Assembly: GCF_000150275.1 (NCBI RefSeq)
Contig: NW_002060994.1
Coordinates: 3,718 to 45,087 of the forward strand
DNA from: Trichoplax adhaerens
Lineage: Eukaryota; Animalia; Placozoa
Reading direction: 5' to 3'
Length of the DNA stretch: 41,370 nucleotides
Each line of letters begins with the position of its first letter. The first letter of the stretch is position 1. The translations under genes were made by a program, and so were the position numbers. Positions 4,032-34,794 of this stretch are shown here, one piece after another. The notes under the pieces are model-generated. The model made no database searches. It was not told the origin of the DNA and saw nothing but the letters and a program-made list of their open reading frames with translations.

Positions 4032-4081
4032 NNNNNNNNNNNNNNNNNNNNNNNNNNNNNNNNNNNNNNNNNNNNNNNNNN
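4032..4081. other. Assembly gap (N run)
   Basis: 50 Ns. Confidence 1.
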
Positions 4082-5451
4082 TTGTCTTGCACTCAGAGAA
4101 ATGGTTTATGAATCAGATTACTGTATATTGATTATCACTTAGTTTCGATATTCACAGATGATTACTTTTGTAATATTTGGAACGAATTTCATAGACATAG
4201 CGACGAAGAACACCATGTGGTAATCCATGTTATTTTAAAACTTATTCCACTAAATTAAAACTCAATTCGTTCTCTACCACTTACAAATTCTCATTGCATT
4301 AACCTTACTCTGAACTATCTCTATTCTTTTCAGTCAACATTTGTTTTTAGTTTAGTCCGAATCGATATTGACAAATAGAGACAAATCAAGATTTGAATTT
4401 GAAGAACAAAATATTTATATGATCAATGTATTTCAGTGTTGCAAGTTTGGTGATAGCTAAAGTCAGATACAGCCGATAGTTACCCTACCATAGAAAGACG
4501 GAGTAGTCTACAAAGCAATTATATATCTGATTAGGGAATTTATGATATCGAGTATAAATACTCACCGCTGCATAAAGGAATAGAAAAAGATGCGTTAGTT
4601 AAAGTTTGGGACAGAAAGAAGCAAGTATTATTTACAGAGTCATAGTTAGTCGTAATGATGTATTCGTATGGATACCGTTGGGGTATGATCATTCTATTAG
4701 AAAATGAAGATCATTGGGCTGTAGCAAATCTGATGAGAACTCGTTACAATGGTTTTAATTGAATTATTTCATGCTGTAGTACTAGTAATTAAGAATGGTA
4801 AAATAACTATTCATATAGATACTAAAGCACTTTGGCCGGATATTATTGAAAAAATACAAAGGCAATATCGTAAAATTGGATTTTAAGGCCCTCTACTTTA
4901 ATGGTAATAACTTATGGTCAAGCAAGCTATTCCTCGTACATAATAACGATCTTTCCCATCTATATATTTACAATGCTAAAATATCACAATTATAAATAAA
5001 TCTACCAATTTATTACTTTAAAATATGCTATATCCAATGGAATCTACAGCAATCTGAATTCCTAGCAAAGTATAGTCTTAATGATGAAAATCTACCTGAT
5101 GGCTACTGTCTATTAAAACAAACTGAATCTAGATAGAAAGTAGAAACAACGCATTTTGATTGTCTATTATCCAAATGTGATGTACCCTGTCTGATAACTT
5201 TGTTTGCAACATTAGACATATAATCGATTTATTAATAGCGGATGTTCTTACGTTGGCTAATCTATTCTGTAATGGAGCTAACTTAGTTGTATTGATAATT
5301 AAAGTTTGATTATGTATTAAAGAGCCAGTGTAATGGTTTAACAGGAATTACTATGACATTAAAATACTAGTACGTCATAGATAAACTTATTTTATTGCCA
5401 TTTTAACTAATTCATAGTCCAAGCTAAAATATACCCAAATAAACGACTCAG

Positions 5452-6148
5452 NNNNNNNNNNNNNNNNNNNNNNNNNNNNNNNNNNNNNNNNNNNNNNNNN
5501 NNNNNNNNNNNNNNNNNNNNNNNNNNNNNNNNNNNNNNNNNNNNNNNNNNNNNNNNNNNNNNNNNNNNNNNNNNNNNNNNNNNNNNNNNNNNNNNNNNNN
5601 NNNNNNNNNNNNNNNNNNNNNNNNNNNNNNNNNNNNNNNNNNNNNNNNNNNNNNNNNNNNNNNNNNNNNNNNNNNNNNNNNNNNNNNNNNNNNNNNNNNN
5701 NNNNNNNNNNNNNNNNNNNNNNNNNNNNNNNNNNNNNNNNNNNNNNNNNNNNNNNNNNNNNNNNNNNNNNNNNNNNNNNNNNNNNNNNNNNNNNNNNNNN
5801 NNNNNNNNNNNNNNNNNNNNNNNNNNNNNNNNNNNNNNNNNNNNNNNNNNNNNNNNNNNNNNNNNNNNNNNNNNNNNNNNNNNNNNNNNNNNNNNNNNNN
5901 NNNNNNNNNNNNNNNNNNNNNNNNNNNNNNNNNNNNNNNNNNNNNNNNNNNNNNNNNNNNNNNNNNNNNNNNNNNNNNNNNNNNNNNNNNNNNNNNNNNN
6001 NNNNNNNNNNNNNNNNNNNNNNNNNNNNNNNNNNNNNNNNNNNNNNNNNNNNNNNNNNNNNNNNNNNNNNNNNNNNNNNNNNNNNNNNNNNNNNNNNNNN
6101 NNNNNNNNNNNNNNNNNNNNNNNNNNNNNNNNNNNNNNNNNNNNNNNN
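5452..6148. other. Assembly gap (N run)
   Basis: Run of Ns; the 262-aa ORF spanning it is an artefact. Confidence 1.
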
Positions 6149-8811
6149 AATTATCCGCTTGATATAGAATAACATTTTAGAAAATATCCTATCAATAGGG
6201 ACATTTAAAAGTATAGTTATTCAGTCATTAGCTAGCAGGTAGGATGCCCTTAGTTTGGGCGTCTGGCTTTAGCACTCTGCGCATTGATAAAAAGACGCTG
6301 CTAGCTTAGACCACCTGCGAAGATACATTAATGTGGTAAAATTCCTCCCAAGTAAATGGCATCGCAGCGCAAGATTCCGACATTTCTACTACGATAGCGT
6401 ATATACGGTATAGGGTTAAATTGTATTTATTTAAGTTTTATCAGCTGATCCGCTAGTTTGACAAACAACTTGATTCTAAACATTTAGCGATATTTCATTT
6501 TCGAAATAAGGCCATAGAATTACTGAAAATGCGAATTCATTAATTATGAAATAAAAGGAATTCACGCAAAGTATATTAATACATATATCATATATCTGTA
6601 TTATTACAGTAAAATATTCCCACAAGAAAATTAAAAATAAAATTCTTTTTAAAGCAGCGGATGCTTATGTACAGATTGCAGCACACTATCTGAGTCTTGA
6701 AGATTTTTATGACGACATATGTATAGATTATACAATCTCTTCCGCAAACCTTACGACAAGATTCTGTAAAACATTAATGTCATATGACTTACGAGTATAC
6801 CAGTAAGTTATTGTACAAATGGTGCTATGGCGGTTTATTATGCTACTGTAAGTTTCTCTAAAGTTTAAAATTTACTCAAACCATTTATACAGTAATATTG
6901 CACGCTTATATATACCAATTTTTAATCGATTTAAAGCGATACCGGCCAAGGTGTTTTCGAACTAAAAATGGACATAAACTTAATCGTAGATGAAAACTAT
7001 TGCCGCACTTAAATATAATTATTATCGAGTATAAAAATTAGTTGATTCAGATGAATATCTACCGAATAGTATTGGTATTAGTACTTACCTCCTGATACAA
7101 TAATCAGTAAATATTCAAATTTAAAAACATGGACTGCTGTAGTTTTCAAGAAAGCCTTCTTAACTGTCAATACTGCATAGGCTATACGTTAGAATGATTT
7201 AAAAGATACGCCATTATCAGTCCATAGGCATAATTATACTAACATAAACGAATTTAGAATTAAATTAGCGTTATAGTACACCATACTAGAACGCTGCTTA
7301 GCCTTAACAATATGGAGCTGCTAATAATATATAATAATAATAATAATATCGTTAGTAATTCGAATTGTACGTTTGATACAGTTTTACTGTATATCGATCT
7401 TTTGAGAATGATGCGCAGGCTGGTATGGTATGGCGTTGGATTTCAAATGTAAACTATCATAATTCAGATCGTAAATTTTTAAAATTGAAGTTAATCCTAT
7501 AAATAAGGAATTTGTAGTAATGTACGAAAGTATATGAAAACCTCTAAATTTATAGTGTATGCTATCATTGTGCTTGCGCAGAGTAATAGCCTAATGATGG
7601 TAAAGGAAAGAGTAAGCGACATGATGATATCGTAACGTAACTTTCATGAATTCTTTTTTTTTTGGGGGGGGCCGGGCAACGCCAGGAAGTTATTACTAGG
7701 TATCTATAAACATAGCAGCTAGCAATATCTACGATGAAACTAGTCATGATGTGTTACCTATATTAAATCTTTATTACAGTAAGGTAAAATATTAAATGTA
7801 CAGTAAGAAGCCGAGTGGTAAGTAACAATATCATGCTAGGCTGTTGCTTGCTTCAATAGCTAAATAATGTAATTTTTAATTGTGCTCATTTTACCTTTAA
7901 AAAATCACTTCAGTTCTAATGCAGCGTTGATAAAATCTAACGTTAAAGATCCCTTTAGAAAATATTTCTTGACATAATTTAATCGTCGTAAGCATTCTTA
8001 TTATATCATGGAATTAGCATTGAAGTAGTGCATGATTATAAAGGTTAGTGAAATTAAGCACCAATTACAACATAAAATCAAATTATTGCTAATATTTCTT
8101 TAATAATAACTTTTTAATGCGCTAGGTATTTATACCAAATCGATTGAGCGTTTATCTTATAATTAAATGAGATTTGATGACTCAATACCCTAACAACTGC
8201 TCGGTAAACAGGTAGTATTATAGCCTTTATTTGATTGCGGTGATGTGTTGGCATGTCAGTTATTTAATCTGGAATACCATTGCAATACAGAATAAGGATA
8301 ACTCGGTTTACACAAGCACAGCATGATGCCTTAAGATTGATGTTCACCAAAATTTAACTAAACACTTCACTATGCAAGTATACCAGCAATGGGAGTTGAC
8401 AAAGTTAAATACACAATTGACGAAATCAACGCGCAACTACGTATCAAGAGTATAAAATCATCTGTCAAAGTAGTTGACATTCCGATTTTACGATATAGGG
8501 GACGGAAATCGGATATTTTGGAGTTTGATAACTAATGATAATTAACTATAGCATTGTTCGTAGGCCACCAACTGGAAGTTGCAAATTTTCTTCGCTAGTG
8601 ACATGGTGTCATCGTTGGAAGGAAAATCCTAAGTAGACAATTTTTTTCAATCCCTATTCGAAGTCACTTTCAGTTAGATCTCATATTCAATAATATCCAA
8701 GAAATTTATTTAAAACTTCAAGGTTCAAATCGCAAATCTACGGTAGCCAGAAAGACTTCTAGCGTTGGCGATTTATTCGTACTAGCATTACAGTGATTAA
8801 TAACATCGAAA

Positions 8812-10269
8812 ATGTTCAAGCGCTTGAAACTAAGAAAGCACAGTACCACCGTACGCCGTAACGTCACGCAACATACTAAAGATCAAAGTATAAAGCAAAT
8901 ACACTTATTTATTTCGTCTTTTATTTTGGAGTTTATTCAAAAACTGATTTTGTATGATCGTATATCTACTGGAGACATAGAAGCTGAAATTGGGAGAAAT
9001 TTTGAGCAATATCAACAATTCATTTCCGATTTCGCTAAACCGCTGACTTCTTTGCTTGGATCAGAAATTTCAGTTCCTATAAATTTAGGCTTAACAATAA
9101 CAACATTTGCTGCCAGAAAATTAAAAAAAAAACTTAATAAAGAGAAGGCTAGTAAGATCATTTCTATTCTTCCCCCTGACGACAGTTCATCTACACTCTT
9201 TGTGGCTTTGCTGGCTTGTGATATTTGTAGAATGTATGAACACCAGATACTGTCAGCAGCCCAGGATACAGGTTGCCTATACCTTAATATAAGAAAACTA
9301 GCGAAGGCGGCGGCAAAACGTGTTCTAAATCACATGGCTAAGTCAAACTCACTAAGTGATAACTCCGTAATTAGAATAATGGATAATAAAAGTAATAGTT
9401 ACAATCAGTTAGTGGACTTGTACGGCAATTGTGTATCTGGAGTATACTATGGCTTTTCAAAGAATTCGTCTGAAAAGTTGTTTGCTAAAAATAGAGACCT
9501 AAAGATCGCCTGTGGCGACTTGCTTACACAGCTAGGCCTTGTATTTGGAGGAGTAGGCGAAAAAGGTAAAGGTTCATATGCTCCTAGCCAAATTAAGTAC
9601 ATTAAACAATGGGGTTATCGCAGACCCTCAATTATCTTCGATTACCATATTTATAAGGATTTTGAGCTAAAAATCACTGACGACGGTAAACTTCCTTCAG
9701 ATAAGACGTTCACTGATAGGGGCTGGATCGTAGTGCAATTTGATACCAGTGATTGGAAGAATTACAAATACTTAAGCCCTTTGTCTTCATTGCATAATTT
9801 TGAGTCTCTCAGAGAATATGCTATATCGGCTTTAAAGAAAACTCTTACGAATGAAGATGAACAATTTACCGCTCAGATTCTGTCAGATCTGAAGATCAAA
9901 GTACAAAGTTTACCGAATAAGGAAGATTTACATAAAGAAATAGATGACGTCATGAAGATTTTAGATCAAATGATTACAAAGGAAGGCGTTGAGAAAATAG
10001 TAAATAAATTGCAAAATGGAATTTTTAGTGAGATTGGTAAAGCAATAGGGCTCTTAAATAAAGCCATAACCAATATAGATAAACTCCAGTCTGATTTTAG
10101 CGAATTTAAAGAAACCTTTAGTTCAAAAATAGGAACAGAAATTCCTGATAAAGGGGATTTATGTAACTTTCGTCACCAGGAAAACAATTTCAATTCCGAT
10201 TACGATCTTATAGGTAAGAAGAAAAATACGGTGCATCTAGTGGCCTATGATCTAGGACAGCTAAATTAA
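8812..10269 (+). CDS. Long intronless ORF (485 aa), predicted exon 1 (donor after 10213) encoding an unassigned helical N-terminal domain plus a coiled-coil-like linker
   Basis: 485-codon open frame in very AT-rich DNA. Strong donor G|GTAAGA at 10213/10214 (phase 1) is compatible with the phase-1 acceptor at 12031/12032. The C-terminal third is heptad-like (LHKEIDDVMKILDQM...IGLLNKAITNIDKLQSDFSEFKE). Confidence 0.8.
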   Translation: MFKRLKLRKHSTTVRRNVTQHTKDQSIKQIHLFISSFILEFIQKLILYDRISTGDIEAEIGRNFEQYQQFISDFAKPLTSLLGSEISVPINLGLTITTFAARKLKKKLNKEKASKIISILPPDDSSSTLFVALLACDICRMYEHQILSAAQDTGCLYLNIRKLAKAAAKRVLNHMAKSNSLSDNSVIRIMDNKSNSYNQLVDLYGNCVSGVYYGFSKNSSEKLFAKNRDLKIACGDLLTQLGLVFGGVGEKGKGSYAPSQIKYIKQWGYRRPSIIFDYHIYKDFELKITDDGKLPSDKTFTDRGWIVVQFDTSDWKNYKYLSPLSSLHNFESLREYAISALKKTLTNEDEQFTAQILSDLKIKVQSLPNKEDLHKEIDDVMKILDQMITKEGVEKIVNKLQNGIFSEIGKAIGLLNKAITNIDKLQSDFSEFKETFSSKIGTEIPDKGDLCNFRHQENNFNSDYDLIGKKKNTVHLVAYDLGQLN

Positions 10270-13200
10270 AAATTTTTATGATATTACAGTGAAATTTAGG
10301 TGAGAAGCTATATGTCAATATAGAATCACTTAGAACTCTATAATTTCAACCAGCTGTGATTTTGATAGTATAACAGCAATACAGTAAGCTTTCAATTCAC
10401 GAGTATAAACTTCTCGAACATTGTATTGCAGAAGCAATAAAAGTTCAGTAGTGATAAATAATGACTGCGCGGATATACATCACAATTAAGGACCGCTTCG
10501 TTGAACTTCCCGTGTTATTGCAGTTTTAAATTATTTAGCTGCCTAGTAACTGTTTACTATAGTATCTACGTTAGTGAAACGACATGTTTAATCTAGTCTC
10601 TATTAAGTATCCTATCTAGCTCAAAAGTTCATAAAATAGTTCCCTGCAATACAGCTTATGCAGTAAAAGCATTAAACAGAATACGCGGCCACTTTTTCTC
10701 TGTCATACATTTTACGTACAATAATTTGAAATGATCACCAATACATGAATTAGATTACATCAGTTTCCACAAAGTAACTTAACAAACATTTATTTAATCA
10801 AGTCATTAACCTTGAATGTTGACGTAAAGCAATTATTTGGATCAAGTTTGACTTTATCCAGTTACTTAACCTCGAAATTGTCATTAAATAACTATATATT
10901 TGGCGGGCTGTTTTGATTTAAAGTTGAATTTGCGAATAGATAAACATTTTGACTTTTAAGATTTATAGCTTCGGTGATATAGCATATCGGCTTTGCAAAC
11001 GAATTCAATGCTGAAGTGAAATTTGATGCAGTAGTCAAATTTCCTCAAATAACTACAAATTGTAAATTTTTCAAGTTACCCTATCTAATAATAAGTCCCT
11101 AGACGTAAAAAAGTTTTAAGAAACCAAAAGAGTAAAATGAATGAGACAATTGTTTGAGCTTAATTTCAACATCTACCTACTATGTCTATTTATAAAATTT
11201 GGAACTTTGGCTGGAATATTCATATAATTTTTCTGATCGTTTGCTTGCTGCCATGTGAATTAACAGAATAAAGACGGATTTTTGTAAAATTATAATGTAC
11301 TGATTGCAAAGTACTTGAAATGGTAATTTACTGTAGTATACTAATCGTATTAACAGTAAATATCCCATTATGATCAACCTAATTTAATACTTCTACGCAA
11401 AACATTGAAATACCGTACTATAGACATCTTTTTCAGAGCACAAATCACAAGTAAACTCACCAGACAAGGATATTCATCTTTTGTTACTGTATTAGAAACT
11501 ATTTAAGATCTAAAAGTATTGTAATATAAAGCATAATTCCAGTCGAATTGTTAAAGTAAGAGTATCCCAGAAATTCTTTGGTATGCTGTGCTTGTAAGAA
11601 CTGTTGTTGGCAAAAAACGAGTAGGCGTTTAAAATAATGACGATCTAATTCGATATTTTCAAAATTTAGAATAGGAAACCATACAGCTAGCCGTCTTACA
11701 TTTGGAAACAATAATAGCATTAATCAGTCCTTACGATAATGAAAATGATTTGTTTATATGATACATTTTAATATTTGATAGGACTATTTTAAATAATTAA
11801 GATTTTATATAGTATTTTATGTAAGTTATTCTGCGCTTCTTCTTGGCAGAATACAGCTTAAATTAATTGTTTAAATCACAAATTTATCATTTAGCTAAGA
11901 CTTACTTATCCTCAATTCGAAAATAAATTAGTATCAGTAGCAAAATAGCAAATTCGCTTAACTGAAGGCGGACGTGATAATTATGATATTGGAAATTATG
12001 AGATAACTTCATATAGCAAATGTTTCTTTAGGAATTCCAGATACGCCAGCAGAAATGTATATTACAAGGAAAGAATTTGTAGGAGAAATCGTTTCCAAAA
12101 TAGTAGAAATTCAAAATAGCAGCAAAAGAAGTATTCTGATATATGGGATAGGAGGTGGCGGAAAAACTGTTGCCGTAAGCCAAGCAGTTCAACAAGTAGC
12201 AAAAATGCCTAAATATAAGTCACGCCTTTCCGCTTATTGGATAACTTTAGGTGAAATTTATTCAAATATTATTGATTTTATCAAGTTATAACCTCAATTT
12301 GTCTACGAAGATTTCAGCTATGTCTAAAATCCTATCAGAATGAAAAGGTAATAGTATGCACTAATGATAAACTCTTTTTTTGCCTATGCAGGTGATAGTA
12401 GCGATGATGAACTTTTGACAAAGTTAAAACTTTTGGCATATTCTTTGGGAATTTCTTTCGCAGATTCTGACTGTAATGATTTAAACGTACTGGGATGTCT
12501 CATTAGGAAACATATTCGCGGTAGAAATGATTAGCAAGTGCAAGTTGTCATTCGAAATATGTTTTGATCTAATTCTGAGAATCGATGTAGTGCAAGGAGT
12601 TTAATAGTCTTTGCATCATACTGCATGATGCTTAAATTTACAATCTCTTTATTTAACAGAAAATAGCAGTGGACCAGAAATTTTATTCATTTTCGACGAT
12701 CTATGGGACGACAGCTACATGTCATACTTGGATTTTTATCGGAAAGCTATCATAATATCACGAAATAAAACTAGAGCAATGCTGAAAACAGATCAAATTG
12801 TCATTGAAGCTAATGTAAACACACTAAAATATTTGTCTACAGATTCTTTCAAGATTCTTAATTAAGGTGTTAATATAATAGAGAATCGCTTTATTTATGA
12901 ACTGATTAACCAGTATTCTCTTTTGTTATTTAAGACAAAATTAACTAAAAGCGAGGCATTTGAAGTCTTTCGTTTGAATCAACCATCTCGACCAATAGAG
13001 GATTTCACGAAAAATCGATATATTTCAGAAATTATCGAGAGATGTCAAGGCCTACCATTAATGATATCCTTAATCGCAGCCCAAAAGTTAACTACCGAAG
13101 CAGAATGGCTGGAATATCTCATTGATTTGCAAAAGAATCTTCAAATCAAGAATGACGATAGCTATTTCTCTACGTTACACAAAAATTTCAATGCAAGTAT

Positions 13201-16200
13201 AGAAAAGTTACAACCGGATGACCAAAAATTATTTATTATGCTTGGAATTTTCAGAAAGTCGAAAATATCCGTAAATTTGATTGGCAGTCTCTGGAAGCTA
13301 CCTTTGAGTACTGTCAGAATGAAATTGCAACAATTTCATTGTAGATCTTTGCTGACGTCCAGGAATTACAAAGAAGATCCGGAATACCGAACGTAATTTT
13401 AACTTGAAGCAAATTATTCAGAATATCGTATGAATTATCTTTGCATACAATATATTTATTTACGTACGTGTTTTTGAAGTCCTTACTTTTCTATATTACA
13501 TAAAAGGGATCATGCCATCTTGCACGACTTAATGGTTGATCACTTAAAGAATCTCTTAGATAATGAATGGGAGAAACATGGACTACATGAAGATTTTGTA
13601 TTGCAAACGTACATAAAACATGCCAACAACTGGGATATTTTTAAAGGTGATCAGTACTTTTGGAACTTCATCACAGACCATGCTATTGCAAGTGGAAACC
13701 AAGATATCATTAAGAAGATTGCAACTGACGTTCGATTTCTCGATCAAAAACTGAAATACGGTATTCCTACCAAAAGGCTCTCTGATGATGCAAATAAGTT
13801 CAGCAAATATTTTGATGATAAAGTAAATATAAAATACGTTTTGGTACTGTTTCTGTTATACGAAGAGTAAGAATGATTCGACGGTGATTTCCTCTTCTTA
13901 TAGGATCAAGAAATGAACCATCTGTCTCAAATCTTGCTGCTACATAGTTGTTTTTTGTTAAAAAATAATAGCGATTTCACTCAATTCGTACTGAATTTCT
14001 CAAATTCGGATTATGCGCTATACGAAAATGCAATTATAGAGGCACGGGAACGCAGAAAATATGGTCATAGTTTTCATGTCATACCTTGGTAAGAAAGCCA
14101 GTCTTGATAATGAGCATAATCTGAAATTGTATAATTATCGCAGAACCAACAATATCTATTATTTAAGGGTAACGGAAATGAAGGTATTAGACGATTGGCA
14201 AGCATCAATAAGTGTTGGCACCAGCTTCAGTGATGTTCATCGTAGATTTGCATGCACTTGTTTGGAAAACTTAGATGTAATTTGTACTTTCAATAATGGC
14301 CATGATGTCTCCACCATAAGTGTACGCATAAGTTTATGTTTACTTAGCAAATTAACAGGGACAGATTAAATCAGTACAAAAATGTTTAAAATACTTATCA
14401 TTCATTTTTAAATATAATAATTTAAATCATTTTAATTTCTATCCAACGTTGACTCTTCCACACTAGGTAAGGAATTACATATCATCAATGACTCAAATTA
14501 ATATCCGCGTCGAAAAAAGACATATTACGAATGCAATACTTTCTGCAACTGGTAAATTAATGGCATATCGTTATGTAAATGCATCGGTAAGGAATGCTAT
14601 TAAAAACAAATTTTTTTGCGTAAAATTCAAAATGAGCCGCAACAAGCGATTTTCCATCAACTTTCAGCTGAATTATATCATGCATATCAATTAACTTATC
14701 TTAAATTAGTAAAATATTAGTTACCGATCATTCTTAAGCGCTAATGGAACCAAAAAATAGTTTTTACGCATGGTATAGTGCACATGAATGATAATGCATT
14801 TTAATATAAGTTTATTTTATGACTATTAATAGCGAAATCAAACAGATATTAGTGAATTCTGGGAAGTATGGGATTTGAATGAAGGGAAAAAGATGAATAT
14901 CCGAAACCAACGAGGAGAATTCGTATCGGAGCTGGATTCTGAATGCATGAGCTTTTCTAGTATGGATGAGTCTATTGTAATTACCTTAACATCAAATAAG
15001 AAAAAGTTTAAAGTAAGGTTCTGGGCTTGATGTTTATTGACTACAAGATTATGCCTTTAATTATCTTTTATCGACAACGTTTTGTCATCTTCAACTTACC
15101 AAATCTAATCCATTTGACGTAGTGTTGGAAAGTTCAAGAAATGACACTGAGACAAGTATGTGAATCTAGGGAGCAAAATTTTCAGACTGAAGGATTTGAT
15201 TTTGTTGAAAATGGATCAAACATATTATCTTGGCATAAGAACTTTAATCACGGAGACAGTGATCTGCAAGAGTGTGAAATTATGGTAAATATATGCGCCA
15301 CAAGATTATTAAGCGATGATAGTGATGCCACAAAATATCGAATTACTATAAATTGTAATGTGACTACAAGACCTCGTTAAACCTTCGCTCGTTAGAGCTT
15401 AGTAACGACGTAATAACAAACGTTCTTTCTAATTCAGATATGGGATGTCAAATCTCTAAGGGAACGATGGATAATGAGAGTCCCGTATTCAATTTCAAAT
15501 ATGATAGATGATACCTTTGTTCAGATACAAATCTCATGCTTAAAAGGTGTAAAATATTTTATTGAAGATTTGTTACTTTTGAATTATAACTATGCGCTCG
15601 GCATGATACCAAGTAAAGAAATTGAAATCGGAAAAGCAAATATTGCGGAATCCTTTTGTAGCTCTTTCTTCTTTATTCATCAAAATGAATATATCATCGA
15701 TTTTGCAATTTCAAATAATAGTCCATATATTGCTATTTTGACAGACGCACTATCGTTTTGCAAAATTCTTGTAAGTAGGTAATAGATTACTGAAACGCTA
15801 GCAATGTAAGCTATTTATATTTGATGTCTTTTTTTGGTAGATTCTTCGCTACGAAAATAAGCAAGTATTCACATCTACCATGATAAAATGCTTAAAGAAT
15901 AGTGTTTCAATAACATTCATGCCAGGAATGCTAGACCTTTGGGTATATAATTCCAGTAATCTGGCCATATATCAATATGGAGTTCAGAACTATAATTCTC
16001 AAGATCCTATAGATGATACCGTTATCGTAGCTTCAGAGTCAACCTGTATAGGAGGAATGCCAATAGTTGCAAGAATAGGATTGAAAGATCAAGGCACAGT
16101 TTTCTTAGAGGTAAATTTTACTAAAATAGAAACTGTTATTTCCCGAATAACTGAGCATTGCTTATGTTGTATTAATGTCCAGGTTCTACCTGTAGGTAAA

Positions 16201-18350
16201 CAGGGGCCTTGAATCTGAAAAGCTGTCATGCTGTAACATTTCTCCCAATGCTAAAATGGCACCTTCTAAATCTATGTACAAAATATTTCTAATAGAAGAT
16301 CTCAAGAGTCTGATTATTGTGGAGATTTCTTATTGTAATAAGAACTGCCATCTTTATAAAGACAGTCTGAATCATAGTCATATCGTTACAATGGTGAGTA
16401 AAGAAAGCCCATTTCCTAAATATTAGAGAGTAATCTTTGATGGAATGGAGGCCAAAAGCTCGTCAGAAACCTTCTGGGTTATCACGACTCCTGCTAATTT
16501 ATTCCAGATAGAAATTTATATCACCAGAGCAAATTATTTTCAATACATCATTATGAATAGCAGTATTAGACTCTAATTTAAGAAGCAGTAGCTTAAATAT
16601 AACGATTTAAAGCCTTAAATTAAAATTTTTCTGATGCAGAGAAAAGACTTTGACAATATTAATGAAAACGTCTGGATAAACTATGAAGTCCTAAATGTTA
16701 ATAGAGAAAAATTTAAATGCAAATTTGAATACAGAAGATGTGATAACATCCTCATATGCATTCTCTGGTTATCAGAAACGGTTAGCAGCCGAAATTGAAA
16801 TGCTATATTGCCTAAATGCTGTATCAGTTAATCTATTCATTGCTATATTTGGACGTCTTGGCAACAAGCTAAAACCATTACGTAAACTTATTACTCTTCT
16901 GCCATAGGTACTAAAATTTAATGTGCTTGCTTACGAAACTGGAGATATATTAGCCACACTCGAGGATGATTCTTATTACTCTACGTTCGTCTATCATGAT
17001 GAATTTAGTTTTGTAATATATTGCCGAACATCAAGTAAAATGCACTATATCAAGGTATTAAATCATACAATGAATTTAAAATTACTTTATAAGCATAATC
17101 TTTCTAGAAGATTTTGGAGAATTTGCGGATTCTATCAATGTATTTTAGCTTCTTTTGAGGAAGGTATCAGTCCTTATTATACGAAGCTATAAAATAATGA
17201 AGTATGATCTAAGTATTAATCAATAACTTAAAATTTATACTCACTTAAAACGACAAATGACGAAGCAAACAATGAAATACTGCTTTCAACCTGTTAAAAA
17301 AGAAGTATTGAATATTAGTATTTCCATAAATCTTACTACCGTATGCTAGGAAATAACTCAAAGCCATTGGGACAGTAGTATTCATGATCTAATTGGCGAC
17401 AAGCAATTCTCAAAACGTGCTCAAAACCGCAGTAGTCGGAATTTTTTGTGTTCTTATACTTTCTTAATGGACGAACACTGTTTATTTACCGTACTGAATT
17501 AATTCTTAAATAGTTTATATCTTTTCAATAACTAGGTCTATGAATTTGAATCAGACAAAATTATGGTTAAACAAACCAATTTAACGACATGTAACAAAGC
17601 GACTACGTACCTTTGTTATCTGTCAGTAACATCTCATTGCGTTAGTCCCTCTAACTTCATCGATATTGATGATTCAGAACACCTGAAAAATTATTTTGAA
17701 CAAAAATATATTGGATGGGTAAGGAAAAATCGGGTAATCTTTGCAATTGAAAATTATTATCATGTTAGATCTAACGGAAGTGTTCACTGATATATGAGCA
17801 CCATAAGAAGATGGGTTTCTAATTACTTTTATCGCATTCATTTGAGGCTTTATAAATACTGCAGCCGCCATATAAAATATCTGTTATAACACCAACTTTT
17901 TACTTTTCCGTATTTTGATCTAGTTACGAAGTCTACCGAAATCAGTTTATTTTTATGTGCGCATAAAGGAGGACTTCGTGGTAAACAAATATCAAATTGA
18001 CCGTAAATACTTTTTACGCAACACTAATAAGGCAAGAATTAGCCTGAATGTGCTCTTACTTTTATATTTAGGTTTATGACAGCCAGCAATCAGTTCGAAG
18101 TATAGGATATAGAGAATGCAGCATAAATATTCCCTTGGATGCAAGATATGCAAAAACTTTGACCAAGAATTTTGTAATTTATCTGTATGGTGGTAAAATT
18201 TATATACATCGCAAGGAGAAAATGCAACTTGTACAGGTTATTCACTCACCTGTGACGGCATCGCTTATTACAGTAAAATGTGACAAGAATGAAAGCCTAC
18301 TCATTAGTCGTGATATTCATCATCAGTATTCATTTTTTAGTAGAATATGA
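8812..18350 (+). CDS. Apaf-1-like STAND/NLR-type protein: uncharacterised N-terminal domain + NB-ARC + WD40-like repeats (multi-exon)
   Basis: Phase-consistent GT-AG exon path read by eye: 8812-10213, 12032-12250, 12392-12520, 12660-12814, 12935-13392, 13507-13822, 13904-14088, 14168-14321, 14467-14586, 14833-15012, 15123-15284, 15438-15770, 15841-16110, 16196-16393, 16640-16780, 16908-17054, 17350-17490, 17536-17763, 17924-17980, 18072-18350. The NB-ARC identity is strong. The exon1-exon2 join and the 3' exons are less certain. Confidence 0.7.
11200..11967 (+). pseudogene. Putative decayed CARD-like and linker exons inside intron 1 of the Apaf-1-like gene
   Basis: Fragments AAM*INRIKTDFCKII/NVLIAK (~11250-11320) and AQITSKLTRQ-GYSSFVTVLETI* (after the acceptor at 11436). 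Exon 11895-11967 reads LRLTYPQFENKLVSVAK*QIRLTEG and joins GIPDTP as in the Apaf-1 LCEG-GVPQRP junction. It has an in-frame stop and a GC donor. Confidence 0.4.
12032..13822 (+). CDS. NB-ARC NTPase module (exons 2-6), Apaf-1/CED-4 type
   Basis: GIP..P..YITR pre-P-loop motif, Walker A GIGGGGKT (12145-12168), Walker B ILFIFDDLWD, sensor-1 IIISRN, CQGLPLMI (GLPL), winged-helix SLW...RSLL, LHDL (MHD motif), then Apaf-1 HD2-like YFWNFITDH...FLDQKL. Confidence 0.93.
14168..18350 (+). CDS. Divergent WD40-like beta-propeller region of the Apaf-1-like protein
   Basis: Repeated phase-0 exons with blade-like motifs: ITNAILSATGKLMAY, WEVWDLNEGK, IWDVKS, IIDFAISNNSPYIAI, LSCCNISPNAK, VYEFESDK. Confidence 0.7.
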
Positions 18351-20439
18351 AATTTTTATTGGTTTTCTTCGCAGACCTGGTAGAATAAATTCACGTAACT
18401 TTGAAAGGTTGAAGAATTTAGGATTTTTACACTGGTCAATAACGAAAAATTTAGATTCACGTTCGTTATTTACTGCCACGAGTACTACAGCTGGAAACTA
18501 TACCAACCATTATTTTTTAGCCTAAAAGTGACATAAATACAGAGTATCATCTATTGCAGTGTAGATACGGAGTGAATCATGTTTAATGTTGTCGTAAGAA
18601 TTTAAATTTACTGGATAACAAGTTTCTGCAATTCATAAGTATGTAGCTAGTCTCAAATTTAATTGACGTTATTAGATTAACACGAAGATCACTTTACCAG
18701 GGATCCTAAATTCCAGTGTTACATAATAGAATTATCTTTGATTGCTATTAACTTGACTATTACCAGCTGATATTATATACTTATTGTGATTTCTATACAC
18801 ATTTAATCGTTCTAAAATGAGGAACTAATCTTCTAATCACAAATTATGCCTTTTTGCACAAGAGGATTTCGTAATGAAAAGCCGCACCTAAATACTTAAG
18901 CGATTTAATCTTCATTAACAACTGATTTAGAATGAAAAATTTAATCATCCGTACGCCAAAGTAAACTTTTCATCTCTTTTGTAATCTGAATAAAAATCAG
19001 CTGAAATGTAGTTTTCAACTTACACTCATAAATGATAACTCGCAGATAGCCAACCAACGATAAGTGTTTAGCAAAAAATACACAGTATCATGAAACTTTC
19101 TCTTGATGGATTTTATCATTACGAACGAATAGATAAGAATAAATAACCTTCCGTATCAAACTAATGATGTACTGGTATAATATATAATAAGTAACAATCA
19201 TTCGAATACGCGATCGATATTATTAAGCACACTAGATACGCACCACAAAGGTATCACATTTAAAGTTAAAATATGTGATCCCATGCAATGGGATATGAAC
19301 ACAATCAGGAAATCAATTAAAATTGATGCAAATCTGATGATAATACTCGATGTCATAAACTCGTGAATAATTTATTAGTTTTAATAATAAAGTTATTTAT
19401 GATAATCTAGTATTTAGCGTTAAAGTACTTCGTTTTCTGGACTGTTTCTGAAAGCCTTCCTTCGTAATTTTCGTTAGCAGCACAATGCAAACCTTAGCGG
19501 CATGGAATAAACTTTTTTACTCAGTTAATTCTCATCAGATCTAGAGTCGTCGAATGAAGATTACAATTTAAGATATTACTTCTTTGACGACTTCTAAACA
19601 TGGAACATAATTAAGAGGCTTGTGCCATTAACCCTTCAAAGCAAAACTTTCATGTTTTAATTTAATATAGGATAGATATACGAAATTGCAAATGAAGGCA
19701 AAATCTATCAACAACTCATATTGTACAGTATTGAGATACAAAGGAAAGAATTTACTTTAAATTGTATTTGATAATCACCTTTTGTAATGTTCCTAGCTCA
19801 TTCTTTGCAACTTGAGAATGAAGTAGTCGTACGGTATTCATAGACTTTATTAGATTAGGCTACAACTTCATTTATAAGTGTACAAGTTTTACCACGCAAA
19901 GTTAACAAAATTCGAGAAGAGAAATCTCTGACATACTTTACGAAATATAAACGATCTTTCCGGAACTCAAAATTCTAGAAGTGAATAAGCAGAAGATAAT
20001 GAGTTTAAACTACAGTTTATCAATCTAGTGAATGAATCTATTTTATCGGACCCCTAATCTAACGTTAAATGAAAATTTCTATTTGGCCCTTCATGATAAG
20101 TGAAGTAAAAAAAGATTTTATAGCCCTCTAGATATTACACCAAAAATTTCCGTCATGAGTGCCGCATAATTCTTAATCTGTCCACCCAAAGAAAGATTAA
20201 AATTGTGGCAATAAACATAGTCAATTTCTAACATTAACTTACTCAATTACTTAAAGATTAAAAGTTAAAGAACTACATAGAAATATTATATGCGTTGTAA
20301 CGTTACTTTAGGGGTATGCAGCTAAAGAGAGTGTTGTGCCAAAAGTAGAATTGTTTCCTTTCGATGCAGTATTTAACGCATCGACGCAGATCAATCTTTT
20401 AAATTTATTCGTGAATGTTGAATTTTCTAACGTCAATAA

Positions 20440-29374: not shown

Positions 29375-31090
29375 CATCGGTTGTTGTAGTAGTAGAAAGA
29401 AGGGTTTGGAAAAAATCTAATTGAACCTATTAGATTATGGCTTATAGATGTAATTAGTATTAAAAAATTGTTATTGGTTGTGTTTTCATTGTAGAAAATA
29501 AAAGTAACCTTTGTAAGGTTTAGTACAGAAGATAATTTATAAGGTTTAGTATGGAAACAATTTATAAGGTTTCGTATGGAAAATAATTTATAAGGTTTAC
29601 TATAGAATGTTTTCTATTAGGTTTAGTATAGAAATACTTTACAGCGCCGTACTTTATAAGGTTTAGTACGAAAAACAAATTATTAGATTTAGTATAGAAA
29701 ATAGATTATAAGATTTAGGGAAATAGTATGGGCAGTAATTTATAATGTTTAAGGTTTATTATGGAAAGTATTTATAAGGTTTAGTATGGAAAATAGTTTA
29801 TAATGCTTAGTATAGAATATATACCGCCGTACCACCCTATAATCGCTGCTGAATTTATATCTTGCAAACGTCGGTAGTGTGTCGGTAACACATCGGTCGC
29901 AGTAGTAGTAGAAACAAGGGTTTCTGTAAAATGCAATGAAACCTGTTAGATTATAGCTTATAGATGTGATTATTATAAAAGAAGTTTTAATTACTTGTGT
30001 TTTAATAGTTGAAATTAATAATAATGTTTGTAATGTTTAGTATGAAAAATAATTTATAAGATTTAGTATAGGAGGTAATTTATAAGGTTTAGTATAGAAA
30101 ATAATTTATAAGGTTTAGTATGGAAAATAGTTTACAAGGCTTAGTGCAGAATATATAATTTATAAGGTTTAGTACGGTGTACTGTACTGTACACTGTACA
30201 GTACGGTATAGCAAAAAAGATATATAACGTTTAGTATAGAAAATAATGTTATATGGCTTAGTATGGAAAATAATTGATAAGGTTTAGTATTGAAAATAAT
30301 TGATAAGGTTTAGTATAGAAAATAATTGATAGTGTTTAGTATAGAATGTATTCTATAAGGTTTAGTATGGAAAATAATATATGGTTAGAGGTTTCAAATG
30401 GAAAATAATTTATAAGATTTAGTATGGAAAATGATTTATAAGGCTAAGTACAGAATGTATATTATAAGGTTTAGTATAGAAAATATTTTAAAAGGTTTGG
30501 TTTATATTAGTAGGGAAAATAATTTATTTAAAATGTTGGTGCCGAATGTATTTTATAAGGTTTAGTATAGAAAATAATATACGAGGTTTAATTTAATATA
30601 GAAAAGTTTTATAAGGTTTAGTATGGAAAATAATTTATAAGGTTTAGTATGAAGAATAATATATCCTCGAGGTTTCGTATCGAAAATAATTTATAGTCTT
30701 TAGTATGGAAAATAATCTATAAGGTTTAGTATGGAGAATAATATAAGATTTAGTATAAAATGTATTTTATAAGGTTTAGTATGAAAAATAATGGGTAAGG
30801 TTTAGCGTGAAGAATAAATTGTAAGGCTTAGTATAGAAAATAATTAATTTATATGGTTTAGTATAAGATGTATTTACAAGGTTTAGTACTGTATAGAAAA
30901 TTAGAGAGATTAATCTGTATAAATTTTATTTTTTATTAAAGAAAATATTTTATAAGGCTTGGTATGGCAGATATCTATAAGGTTTAGTATGCAAAGTCAT
31001 TTATAAGGTTTAGTACGCAAAATAATTTATAAGGTTTAGTATACAGCAGAATGTACAGTATATTATAAGGTTTAGTATTAAAAATAATTT
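29375..31090. repeat. Composite tandem repeat: ~140-bp head + array of ~26-bp units, present twice
   Basis: Unit consensus TTTATAAGGTTTAGTATRGAAAATAA, arrays at ~29510-29820 and ~30026-31090. The heads starting CATCGGT at 29375 and 29891 are clearly homologous (GTAGTAGTAGAAA...TTAGATTATrGCTTATAGATGT). Confidence 0.92.
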
Positions 31091-33267: not shown

Positions 33268-33641
33268 TGATAATAAGATCTATTGTTTACATGAGAATAT
33301 GAAGACAGTTAGACCGGTCTTCAAATGAATAGCGTGCGATAAAATTTCAGATTAAGTTGATTTTAAAAAGCCTTACAACAAAGAATTTTTTAGTTCCTTT
33401 ATATTTGTTGTAAACAGTAAACTTTTCATCCGTAAGATTTCATTTTCGAAAATTGATAATAAAATCTATTGTTTACATGAAAATATGAAGACAGTTAGAT
33501 GCGTCTACAAATGAACAGCTTGCGATAAAATTACAGATTAAGTTGATTTAAAAAAGCTTTACAACAAAGAATTTTTTAGTTCGTTTATATTTGTTGTAAA
33601 CAGTAAACTTTTCATCCGTATTATTGCATTTTCGAAAATTG
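33268..33641 (+). repeat. Tandem duplication of ~186 bp immediately upstream of the Tc1 transposase
   Basis: Copies start at 33268 and 33454 (TGATAATAA.ATCTATTGTTTACATGA.AATATGAAGACAGTTAGA...CATTTTCGAAAATTG). Confidence 0.92.
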
Positions 33642-33660: not shown

Positions 33661-34794
33661 TTTGGAAAAAGAAAGATCTGAATGCAAAGCACAAATTATG
33701 GCCTTCTCTAAAGCAAACTGGACATAACATAGAATTGCCGACAAACATAAGATTTCTGTGCCATCAGTAAAATGAGTTATGGTATCGTACCGTGAGAATG
33801 GGACCTGGAATATCACAAAAAGAGGAAACTGTGATGGAATAAGGAAGACTACAGCAAGAGACGACAGAATAATAATCAACGCCGTCAAAACAGACCCATT
33901 TATAAACAGTAAGGAAGTAGCCGGCATGGTAGCAGAGATGATTTCTCGTAGAAGCGATGCTTCTATGGTCAGGCGTCAATTAATTGGAAAAAAACTTAAA
34001 GCGAGGCATCAAGAGGTCAAGCCATTGCTAACGGAAGCCGCAATTTATAAAAGGGTCCGATGGTGTGAGGCTTGTAAAGATCTTGAAGAAGAATATTGGA
34101 AAAAAGTATTAATTAGCGATGAAAGTTGATTCCTACAATTTAGATTTATAGGCAAATACTAGAATTATGGTAAACAGTGGAGAAATATTAACTTTAAACC
34201 TTACCTTTAATGTTATGAATCAGCCTTCTGGAGAATCTAGCTTGAATATTATTTTAAAATTTATTTTTTAGGCCAGTATGTAAGGCGCCCGCGGTACCTC
34301 CGCTATTATCCTTATTATACCAGAAAATCGGTGCGCCATTCTCCATCCTTTATGGTATGGGGGTTCTTCTATGCCGCAGGAGTGGGATGTTTGTTCTTTC
34401 TCCCTAAGGGAATAAATATAAAGAAAAGGAATTATAAAGACCTTTTGGATATAGTTTTCCTCGAGGAAATGGGATAGCTAGACTGTGGCACTTTCATGTA
34501 CGACGGTGCGCTAGTCCACAAGGCGAGCTTGGTGTCCCAATGGATTTCGGACAAAAGGGTTAAGGTATGCCCTAGACAGGCAACTCGCCTGACCTTAACC
34601 CGATTGAAAATTAATGGAAAATGCTGAAATGCAGAGTGGCCATGAGAAGGCCTAAATCTTGAATTCGGTTAAAGGCGATAAAACAAAGTGTTTGGAATTA
34701 ACTTAGCATAGAGTACTGTAACACATTAGTAAGCAGTCTGCCAATAAAACCTCAACAAGTAATTTCACATAAAGGAATGCATACAAAATATTAA
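33661..34794 (+). mobile_element. Decayed Tc1-family (DD34E) transposase with an apparent intron at 34152-34271
   Basis: HTH region (RIADKHKISVPSVK, RKTTARDDRIII), KPLLT, WKKVLISDES, YVRRP, FMVWGFF, FMYDGALVH, NSPDLNPIEN*W, C-terminal KGMHTKY*. D-to-E spacing is 34 after correcting one frameshift; there are several stops. Confidence 0.93.

Follow-up and report, generated by a model that had tools for sequence, protein, structure and literature searches.

Analysis of a 41,370-nucleotide stretch of the Trichoplax adhaerens genome (the window; contig C1363, positions 3718–45087) identified an intact, transcribed paralog of Apaf-1 from which the N-terminal CARD of Apaf-1-type proteins is missing, and in which a large N-terminal region of a different kind stands in its position. 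The gene, TRIADDRAFT_62454 (XP_002118416.1; UniProt B3SDU7; P0001 in our set), encodes a protein of 1675 amino acids in 20 coding exons, and its public record carries just the name 'NB-ARC domain-containing protein'. From the N-terminus, its parts are a head domain (residues 1–345), a coiled-coil stalk (345–445), NB-ARC, a winged-helix domain, helical domain 2 and WD40-like repeats. By sequence comparison, the head is a conserved, placozoan-restricted module that appears to have gone undescribed. The gene model and the expansion of Apaf-1 in placozoans are already public; what is undescribed is the shuffled placozoan head.

The head is encoded by the open reading frame 8812–10269 on the forward strand (485 amino acids), in which position 8812 is the first ATG past an in-frame stop. 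The frame continues for 18 codons beyond a splice donor (GTAAGA after position 10213) to a stop of its own. This donor and the acceptor of the NB-ARC exons (AG before position 12032) are both in phase 1, and the protein across the junction reads ...DYDLIG|IPDTPAEMYITRKEF (given also as ...DYDLIG|IPDTPAEMYITRKEFVGEIV). A preliminary description of the window, made from its letters, had proposed the 10213 to 12032 splice as the test of whether the frame belongs to an NB-ARC gene of about 20 exons; the splice is present in transcripts, and the public model has that number of coding exons.

To be specific, we placed RNA and DNA contigs from four public runs (X1, X5, X8 and X11) on the stretch 8400–14300. 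A 5332-nt contig of X5 comprises 963 nt of exon 1 (9248–10210), skips an 1818-nt GT..AG gap, resumes at 12029 and goes on through six more GT..AG joints downstream; the first joint was placed at 10210 to 12029 with a cut of +3, equivalent to 10213 to 12032. The same joint is crossed by a 151-nt contig of X11, which comes from a different study. The RNA nature of X5 and X11 is guessed, not declared, and contigs lacking introns with GT..AG borders leave spliced RNA as their sole possible source. Exon 1 is also covered by X8, a declared RNA-seq run whose strain differs slightly, and this run crosses the joints linking exons 2 to 6 as well. A contig of X1 covers the whole stretch unspliced and is therefore DNA-like. 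The seven RNA-supported exons are each free of stops and match P0001 exactly, starting at residues 1, 469, 542, 585, 636, 789 and 894, so the public model uses identical junctions. The frame 8812–10269 is thus exon 1 of an expressed NB-ARC gene.

Downstream of the head, the ATPase body is that of an Apaf-1-type protein. Pfam assigns NB-ARC to residues 482–706 (E 3.5e-15) and the APAF1_C helical domain (PF17908) to residues 814–941 (E 9e-9 on P0001, 1e-6 on the exon), and the P-loop (GIGGGGKT), Walker B (LFIFDDLW), GLPL and LHD (residue 793) motifs are all intact in P0001. In a search of solved structures, residues 468–944 aligned to residues 118–588 of Apaf-1 (E 8e-25). Since this alignment begins right after the CARD and linker of Apaf-1, the 467-residue N-terminus occupies the CARD position. 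The proposal that the gene encodes an Apaf-1-like signal transduction ATPase with numerous domains (STAND), its CARD position taken by a large unassigned domain and a coiled-coil linker, is borne out by this alignment.

The C-terminal repeats are probably divergent WD40-like beta-propellers, forming the sensor. A profile of four family members aligned to Apaf-1 up to residue 783, inside the first propeller, and the language-model features of the region in the ESM Atlas resembled WD40 clusters (0.92, with 173 shared features). Pfam WD40 models gave no match to the C-terminal 715 residues, even at E 10. The earlier assignment of these repeats to WD40 thus has indirect backing, from profile extension and language-model features, and none from Pfam.

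Searches of the genome (105.6 Mb in 1414 contigs) found Pfam CARD above cut-off in at least 35 places and Pfam Death in about 118. On contig C1363 there were zero CARD matches up to E 10 and zero Death matches up to E 1, and the open frames of intron 1 gave no Pfam match, CARD and Death included. The head itself contains no CARD or other death-fold domain, no TIR and no kinase domain by Pfam, as the preliminary description had stated, and the same database offered no other candidate output domain anywhere in TRIADDRAFT_62454.

Relatives of the head are few, and every named one belongs to Trichoplax. A phmmer search of 1.84 billion cluster representatives returned just nine proteins (E 1e-190 to 1e-11), namely proteins of Trichoplax adhaerens and of Trichoplax sp. 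H2 and a set of short ENA sequences (P0004, P0006–P0010); the latter look like first exons from other placozoans. Pattern-seeded scans of limited sensitivity, using alignments of two sub-families, found no head relatives in 185,579 prokaryote genomes or in JGI metagenomes. The 12 family members share no Pfam family and no PADLOC family over the head. A profile search of PDB sequences with the head gave nothing significant (best match FliS, E 0.02), and the top score in the ESM Atlas, 0.83, lay inside noise.

Structure prediction with AlphaFold2 was unusable for the head without an alignment (predicted local distance difference test, pLDDT, 36) and yielded a medium model with the 12-sequence alignment (pLDDT 61.5; predicted template modelling score, pTM, 0.60). 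The model presents a part made of helices (about residues 13–213), a small alpha/beta part (about 215–345) and long coiled-coil helices (330–442); in the layout of the head we take the helical subdomain as about residues 20–215. Fold searches with it (Foldseek against PDB, VIA-align wide, VIA second look and BFVD) retrieved generic helical hairpins and coiled coils only.

Conservation within the family is concentrated in a few blocks. Heads linked to NB-ARC share the columns C136, D137, C139, R140, Q145, G214, S216, L241, G268 and R270, while F33 and I38 are invariant family-wide and Q145 is almost so. All family features are present in the window head: the N-terminal helix containing F33 and I38, the ACD(I/L)xR(M/I)xE(H/Q)Q block, the G(Y/F)RR block and the C-terminal coiled coil. 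The motif-like blocks picked out earlier from the letters (ACDICRMYEHQI, GVYYGFS, GLVF and WGYRR) fall on conserved columns of the family.

The head occurs in three architectures. In the first, it is followed by NB-ARC, at no fewer than four loci including the window gene. Contig C1381 carries two such genes in tandem, with heads 67% and 30% identical to that of the window and the first NB-ARC exon 1.1–1.2 kb downstream; the public model of the paralog, TRIADDRAFT_62114, ends at 555 amino acids. A further gene, at 328k on contig C1392, has its head split over two exons, followed by exons with the P-loop, Walker B and GLPL. Trichoplax sp. H2 has two head–NB-ARC proteins, both annotated 'Apaf-1' (P0003 and P0013).

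The second architecture joins the head to a Death domain, as in TRIADDRAFT_61448 (545 amino acids) and its H2 ortholog TrispH2_003548 (556 amino acids), which are 98–100% identical, were annotated independently of each other and both end in a Pfam Death domain. These heads align to residues 29–445 of the window protein (BLASTP E 1e-12, P0014), and the Death domain is separate and C-terminal, not part of the head (P0014 and P0015). A second head–Death locus, on contig C1404, consists of exon A, exon B and a Death exon (45 bits). On C1392 the head–Death gene (319871–324388) lies directly upstream of the head–NB-ARC gene (328357–333948) on the same strand, and in Trichoplax sp. H2 the two kinds of gene have the neighbouring tags TrispH2_003548 and TrispH2_003549; the C1392 tandem may be a functional pair. 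In the third architecture (TRIADDRAFT_62502, 62074 and 62403), the head stands alone with a long coiled coil.

The anticipated exchangeability of the N-terminal region is thus seen in genes where the head precedes NB-ARC, precedes Death or stands alone. From these sequences, we regard the head as a swappable N-terminal module that probably serves as signalling output.

Several other loci were noted in the course of the family survey. The head–Death locus of C1404 (1720793–1724382, minus strand) lies in a region (1.69–1.81 Mb) densely packed with CARD and Death exons. Decayed copies of the head, with internal stops or reduced to fragments, are found at C1413:3218189–3219208 and on C1382 and C1332. 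An apparent 4411-residue open frame beside a head fragment on C1372 (about 76800–90000) was discarded, as it is a run of N open in all six frames and there is no giant gene.

Comparison of paralogs indicates how the head may have moved. The first 400 residues of the window protein are 68–79% identical to those of the H2 protein P0013, and the other 1275 just 18–35%. True orthologs between T. adhaerens (H1) and H2 are 98–100% identical, so these two proteins are paralogs that would share a young head. At the nucleotide level, the window and the C1381 paralog are 71% identical over 533 bp of 5' flank and 78.5% over exon 1; in intron 1, patches at 10249–10355 and 11585–11831 are about 69% identical to the paralog intron (68.6% for the latter). 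The NB-ARC parts of the same two genes share 33–48% amino-acid identity. An exon-1 cassette far more alike between paralogs (about 70–79%) than the NB-ARC and repeat bodies (about 20–40%) points to cassette shuffling, and the simplest reading is that a cassette of promoter, exon 1 and intron was carried by duplication or conversion to NB-ARC backbones of divergent sequence, the breakpoint lying inside intron 1. The ratio of nonsynonymous to synonymous substitution rates (dN/dS) between exon 1 and the C1381 paralog is 0.38, and the head is, by such comparison, under purifying selection.

These observations lead to the hypothesis, to which we give about an even chance, that the head is the output or effector module of an Apaf-1-type STAND protein. 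Mechanistically, the repeats would sense a ligand and, together with nucleotide exchange, drive a ring-like oligomerisation of the kind seen in STAND proteins generally; the coiled-coil stalks would gather the heads, and induced proximity would turn the head on as output. STAND proteins behave in this manner in the apoptosome, the inflammasomes, the plant resistosomes, and the fungal and bacterial NOD-like receptors (NLRs). In turn, Death-domain assemblies would receive the same output through the head–Death proteins, giving an 'all-in-one' and a 'two-component' wiring of one module, as is known from the fungal HeLo/HET-S systems.

Four points weigh against this assignment. Fusion to a Death domain would suit an adaptor no less than an effector. 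An enzyme with a conserved active site is disfavoured by the scarcity of residues invariant across the family, which would suit an interaction module equally. Ring oligomerisation of TRIADDRAFT_62454 is expected from homology, and the WD40 identity of the putative sensor draws on profile extension and Atlas features, with no Pfam match behind it.

The alternative that best survives beside the effector hypothesis, and which we consider possible though clearly the less probable, is that the head stands in for the CARD as an adaptor for homotypic recruitment. Heads clustered by an oligomerised NB-ARC protein would recruit head–Death proteins such as TRIADDRAFT_61448, which would in turn lead to death-fold assemblies and caspases, so that caspases would not be bypassed. 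Being joined to Death domains in other genes, the head may equally feed death-fold and caspase signalling. One domain shared by a sensor-type protein and a small protein that carries a second adaptor domain is the pattern of CARD and PYD in ASC and RAIDD; the adjacency of the head–Death and head–NB-ARC genes on C1392, matched by the H2 tags 003548 and 003549, and the lack of catalytic-type invariant residues in the head agree with such a role. However, the head module with its coiled coil spans about 420 residues in three sub-parts, far above the size of known homotypic adaptor domains. No head was found fused to a caspase, a kinase or another enzyme, and the gene adjacency may be plain tandem duplication.

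If the head does act as an effector, membrane attack is one possible activity among several, and an unlikely one in our estimate. In its strong form, this alternative makes the head a membrane-inserting executioner of the coiled-coil (CC), RPW8, HeLo or MLKL type, and the protein an animal 'resistosome'; that such an animal-specific, for instance membrane-permeabilising, executioner is fired directly by an Apaf-1-type ring seems to us similarly doubtful. The first 215 or so residues are all-helical in the model, with a conserved hydrophobic helix (residues 26–47) that contains the invariant F33 and I38, and behind it a moderately hydrophobic stretch, conserved and containing Pro/Gly, leads into a basic run (residues 75–112). 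The coexistence of 'all-in-one' and 'two-component' architectures also recalls the fungal HeLo systems.

The hydropathy of the stretch is less favourable. The segment at residues 83–101, described beforehand as a hydrophobic hairpin, averages 0.98 on the Kyte-Doolittle scale, under the transmembrane range. The highest 19-residue mean of the window protein is 1.53, and no classical transmembrane segment was found in it by hydropathy. The equivalent hairpin reaches 19-residue means of 1.65–1.84 in a few relatives, yet the stretch is not kept in the Death-linked subfamily. About 25 residues precede the conserved helix, which does not lie at the very N-terminus, and searches of the head against Pfam, PADLOC, PDB sequences and folds gave no match to pore-forming helical domains, including the CC, RPW8, HeLo and MLKL folds and families. 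Were the executioner form true, placozoans would have caspase-independent, resistosome-like death receptors, with the same executioner also wired to Death-domain platforms.

A head that serves in regulation, localisation or (decoy-like) sensing, while output leaves the protein by another route, also seems to us rather improbable. No experiment ties the head to output, and a scaffolding or tethering role is conceivable for the head-only proteins with their long coiled coils, as hinted by weak Pfam matches of coiled-coil type (COG5/6_N, BLOC1_2 and DUF948). On the other hand, Apaf-1-type and other STAND proteins place output at the N-terminus and sensing in the C-terminal repeats, the repeats are retained here, and TRIADDRAFT_62454 has no other candidate output domain. 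Last, an annotation artefact, in which 8812–10269 would be an independent gene joined in silico to the NB-ARC exons, is largely refuted and highly improbable: the stop 18 codons past the donor and the paralog model TRIADDRAFT_62114 ending at 555 residues would suit it, but exon 1–exon 2 contigs spliced in two studies (one of them through six further joints), the head-then-NB-ARC order at four loci and the absence of X5 depth past about 10370 speak against it.

The layout of the gene, all on the forward strand, is as follows. The 5' untranslated part of exon 1 extends at least over 8487–8811, where contig 10 of X5 is collinear on 8487–9276, and coding exon 1 (8812–10213; residues 1–467, head domain and coiled-coil stalk) is defined by the open reading frame and by RNA contigs of X5, X8 and X11. 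Intron 1 (10214–12031, 1818 nt, GT..AG) is skipped in X5 and X11 and retained in X1. Exons 2–5 (12032–12250, 12392–12520, 12660–12814 and 12935–13392) encode NB-ARC, with joints in X5, X8 and X11 and the Pfam match. Exons 6 and 7 (13507–13822 and 13904–14088), assigned by joints and Pfam APAF1_C, encode the LHD motif, the winged-helix domain and helical domain 2. Exons 8–19 (14168–18236) encode the C-terminal repeat region of about 700 residues and were mapped from P0001, the RNA joints having been checked as far as 14168; exon 20 with the stop codon of the public model (18931–18984) was likewise mapped from P0001.

Two 3' ends are candidates: the public splice from 18236 to 18931, or read-through of the donor at 18236 to a stop at 18350. 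The gene end at 18350 given in the preliminary description thus corresponds to a stop reached by read-through, while the public model ends in the exon at 18931–18984.

Variation between the runs and the window was also recorded. X8 (organism B), a close strain expressing the same gene, differs from the window by nine single bases between 8792 and 13212, in exons 1, 4 and 5. The X1 contig has a 5-bp insertion (CACAA) at 11225 in intron 1, a strain or haplotype difference. A separate 166-nt contig of X5 (11467–11632, depth 3) also lies in intron 1; it may stem from pre-mRNA or a small transcript, or mark a conserved element of the intron. The overlapping stretch 11585–11831 is without CARD or other Pfam signal.

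The remainder of the window, which is AT-rich (G+C about 32%), holds some further features. Assembly gaps (runs of N) are found at 4032–4081 and 5452–6148, and an apparent 262-residue open reading frame on the reverse strand (5387–6175) and a dip to 13% G+C were rejected as artefacts of the latter gap. A 26-bp tandem repeat that fills about 1 kb (29510–29641 and 30027–31043; unit TTTATAAGGTTTAGTATGGAAAATAA) shows a strong G-over-C skew. Two copies of a 186-bp direct repeat, 92% identical, are found immediately upstream of a 116-residue open reading frame with a Tc3-type transposase helix-turn-helix (PF01498, E 5.5e-8); together (33268–33641 and 33779–34126) they are probably a remnant of a Tc1/mariner-type transposon.

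Taken as a whole, these results bear on how animal NB-ARC receptors are built. The textbook animal Apaf-1 is a STAND sensor that signals solely via its CARD to a caspase, whereas plants, fungi and bacteria fit varied executioner heads to the same ATPase chassis. The occurrence, in an early-branching animal, of several expressed Apaf-1-type genes with a large non-death-fold head, together with the swapping of that head onto Death-domain proteins and between NB-ARC backbones, suggests that modular 'effector swapping' on NB-ARC receptors is at work in animals too. The head is, moreover, a concrete, clonable domain.

Kamm et al. (2019; PMC6321704) reported the expansion of Apaf-1-like NB-ARC genes in placozoans; some of their models have neither a CARD nor a Death-like domain, and no replacement domain was described there. 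TrispH2_003549, for instance, is listed as 'NB-ARC' with no effector domain (Dataset S3D of the same work), and the head accounts for several such entries in that placozoan immune inventory. A full-text literature search found no paper naming TRIADDRAFT_62454 or the head domain. A comparable recent case of a newly recognised N-terminal effector domain on animal STAND ATPases, showing that such heads are under current study, is TeTIR-STAND, of the TEP1 family (bioRxiv 10.64898/2026.09.21.753143). TeTIR, however, is a TIR-like NADase on NACHT proteins, while the window head sits on NB-ARC and has no TIR signal.

With human and mouse Apaf-1 (PDB 1z6t, 3sfz and 5juy), as with CED-4 and Dark, the window protein has in common the core of NB-ARC, winged-helix and helical domain 2, the motifs of that core and a putative C-terminal repeat sensor. 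It differs in having, instead of the CARD, a 345-residue head and a 100-residue coiled-coil stalk, and in repeats so divergent that Pfam WD40 models miss them; it is also the product of one of many placozoan paralogs (PMC6321704). A parallel to the second architecture is offered by the bipartite adaptors ASC (PYD–CARD) and RAIDD/CRADD (CARD–DD, a Death domain). TRIADDRAFT_61448 and TrispH2_003548 are likewise bipartite, with head and Death, and lie beside a head–NB-ARC gene, but the head is about 4–5 times the size of a death-fold domain (about 90 residues) and has no death fold by Pfam.

The plant CNL and RNL resistosomes (CC- and RPW8-type NLRs; ZAR1, NRC and ADR1/NRG1) have a related NB-ARC, the family profile matching ADR1 at E 8e-14 and NRC2 at about 1e-5, and they too present a non-death-fold, largely helical N-terminal module in the output position. 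The placozoan head, however, matched neither CC nor RPW8 in sequence or fold, and the putative sensor is WD40-like rather than built of leucine-rich repeats.

In fungi, HeLo/HET-S with NWD2 and the 'all-in-one' HeLo-NLRs place an N-terminal module either on a nucleotide-binding oligomerisation domain (NOD) protein or on a small separate protein. The recruitment domain of the small placozoan proteins is Death and not an amyloid motif, and the head is unrelated in sequence to HeLo; in the same way as the fungal module, nevertheless, the window head is carried either by a NOD protein or by a small one bearing a recruitment domain, and it appears to have been shuffled between NOD backbones.

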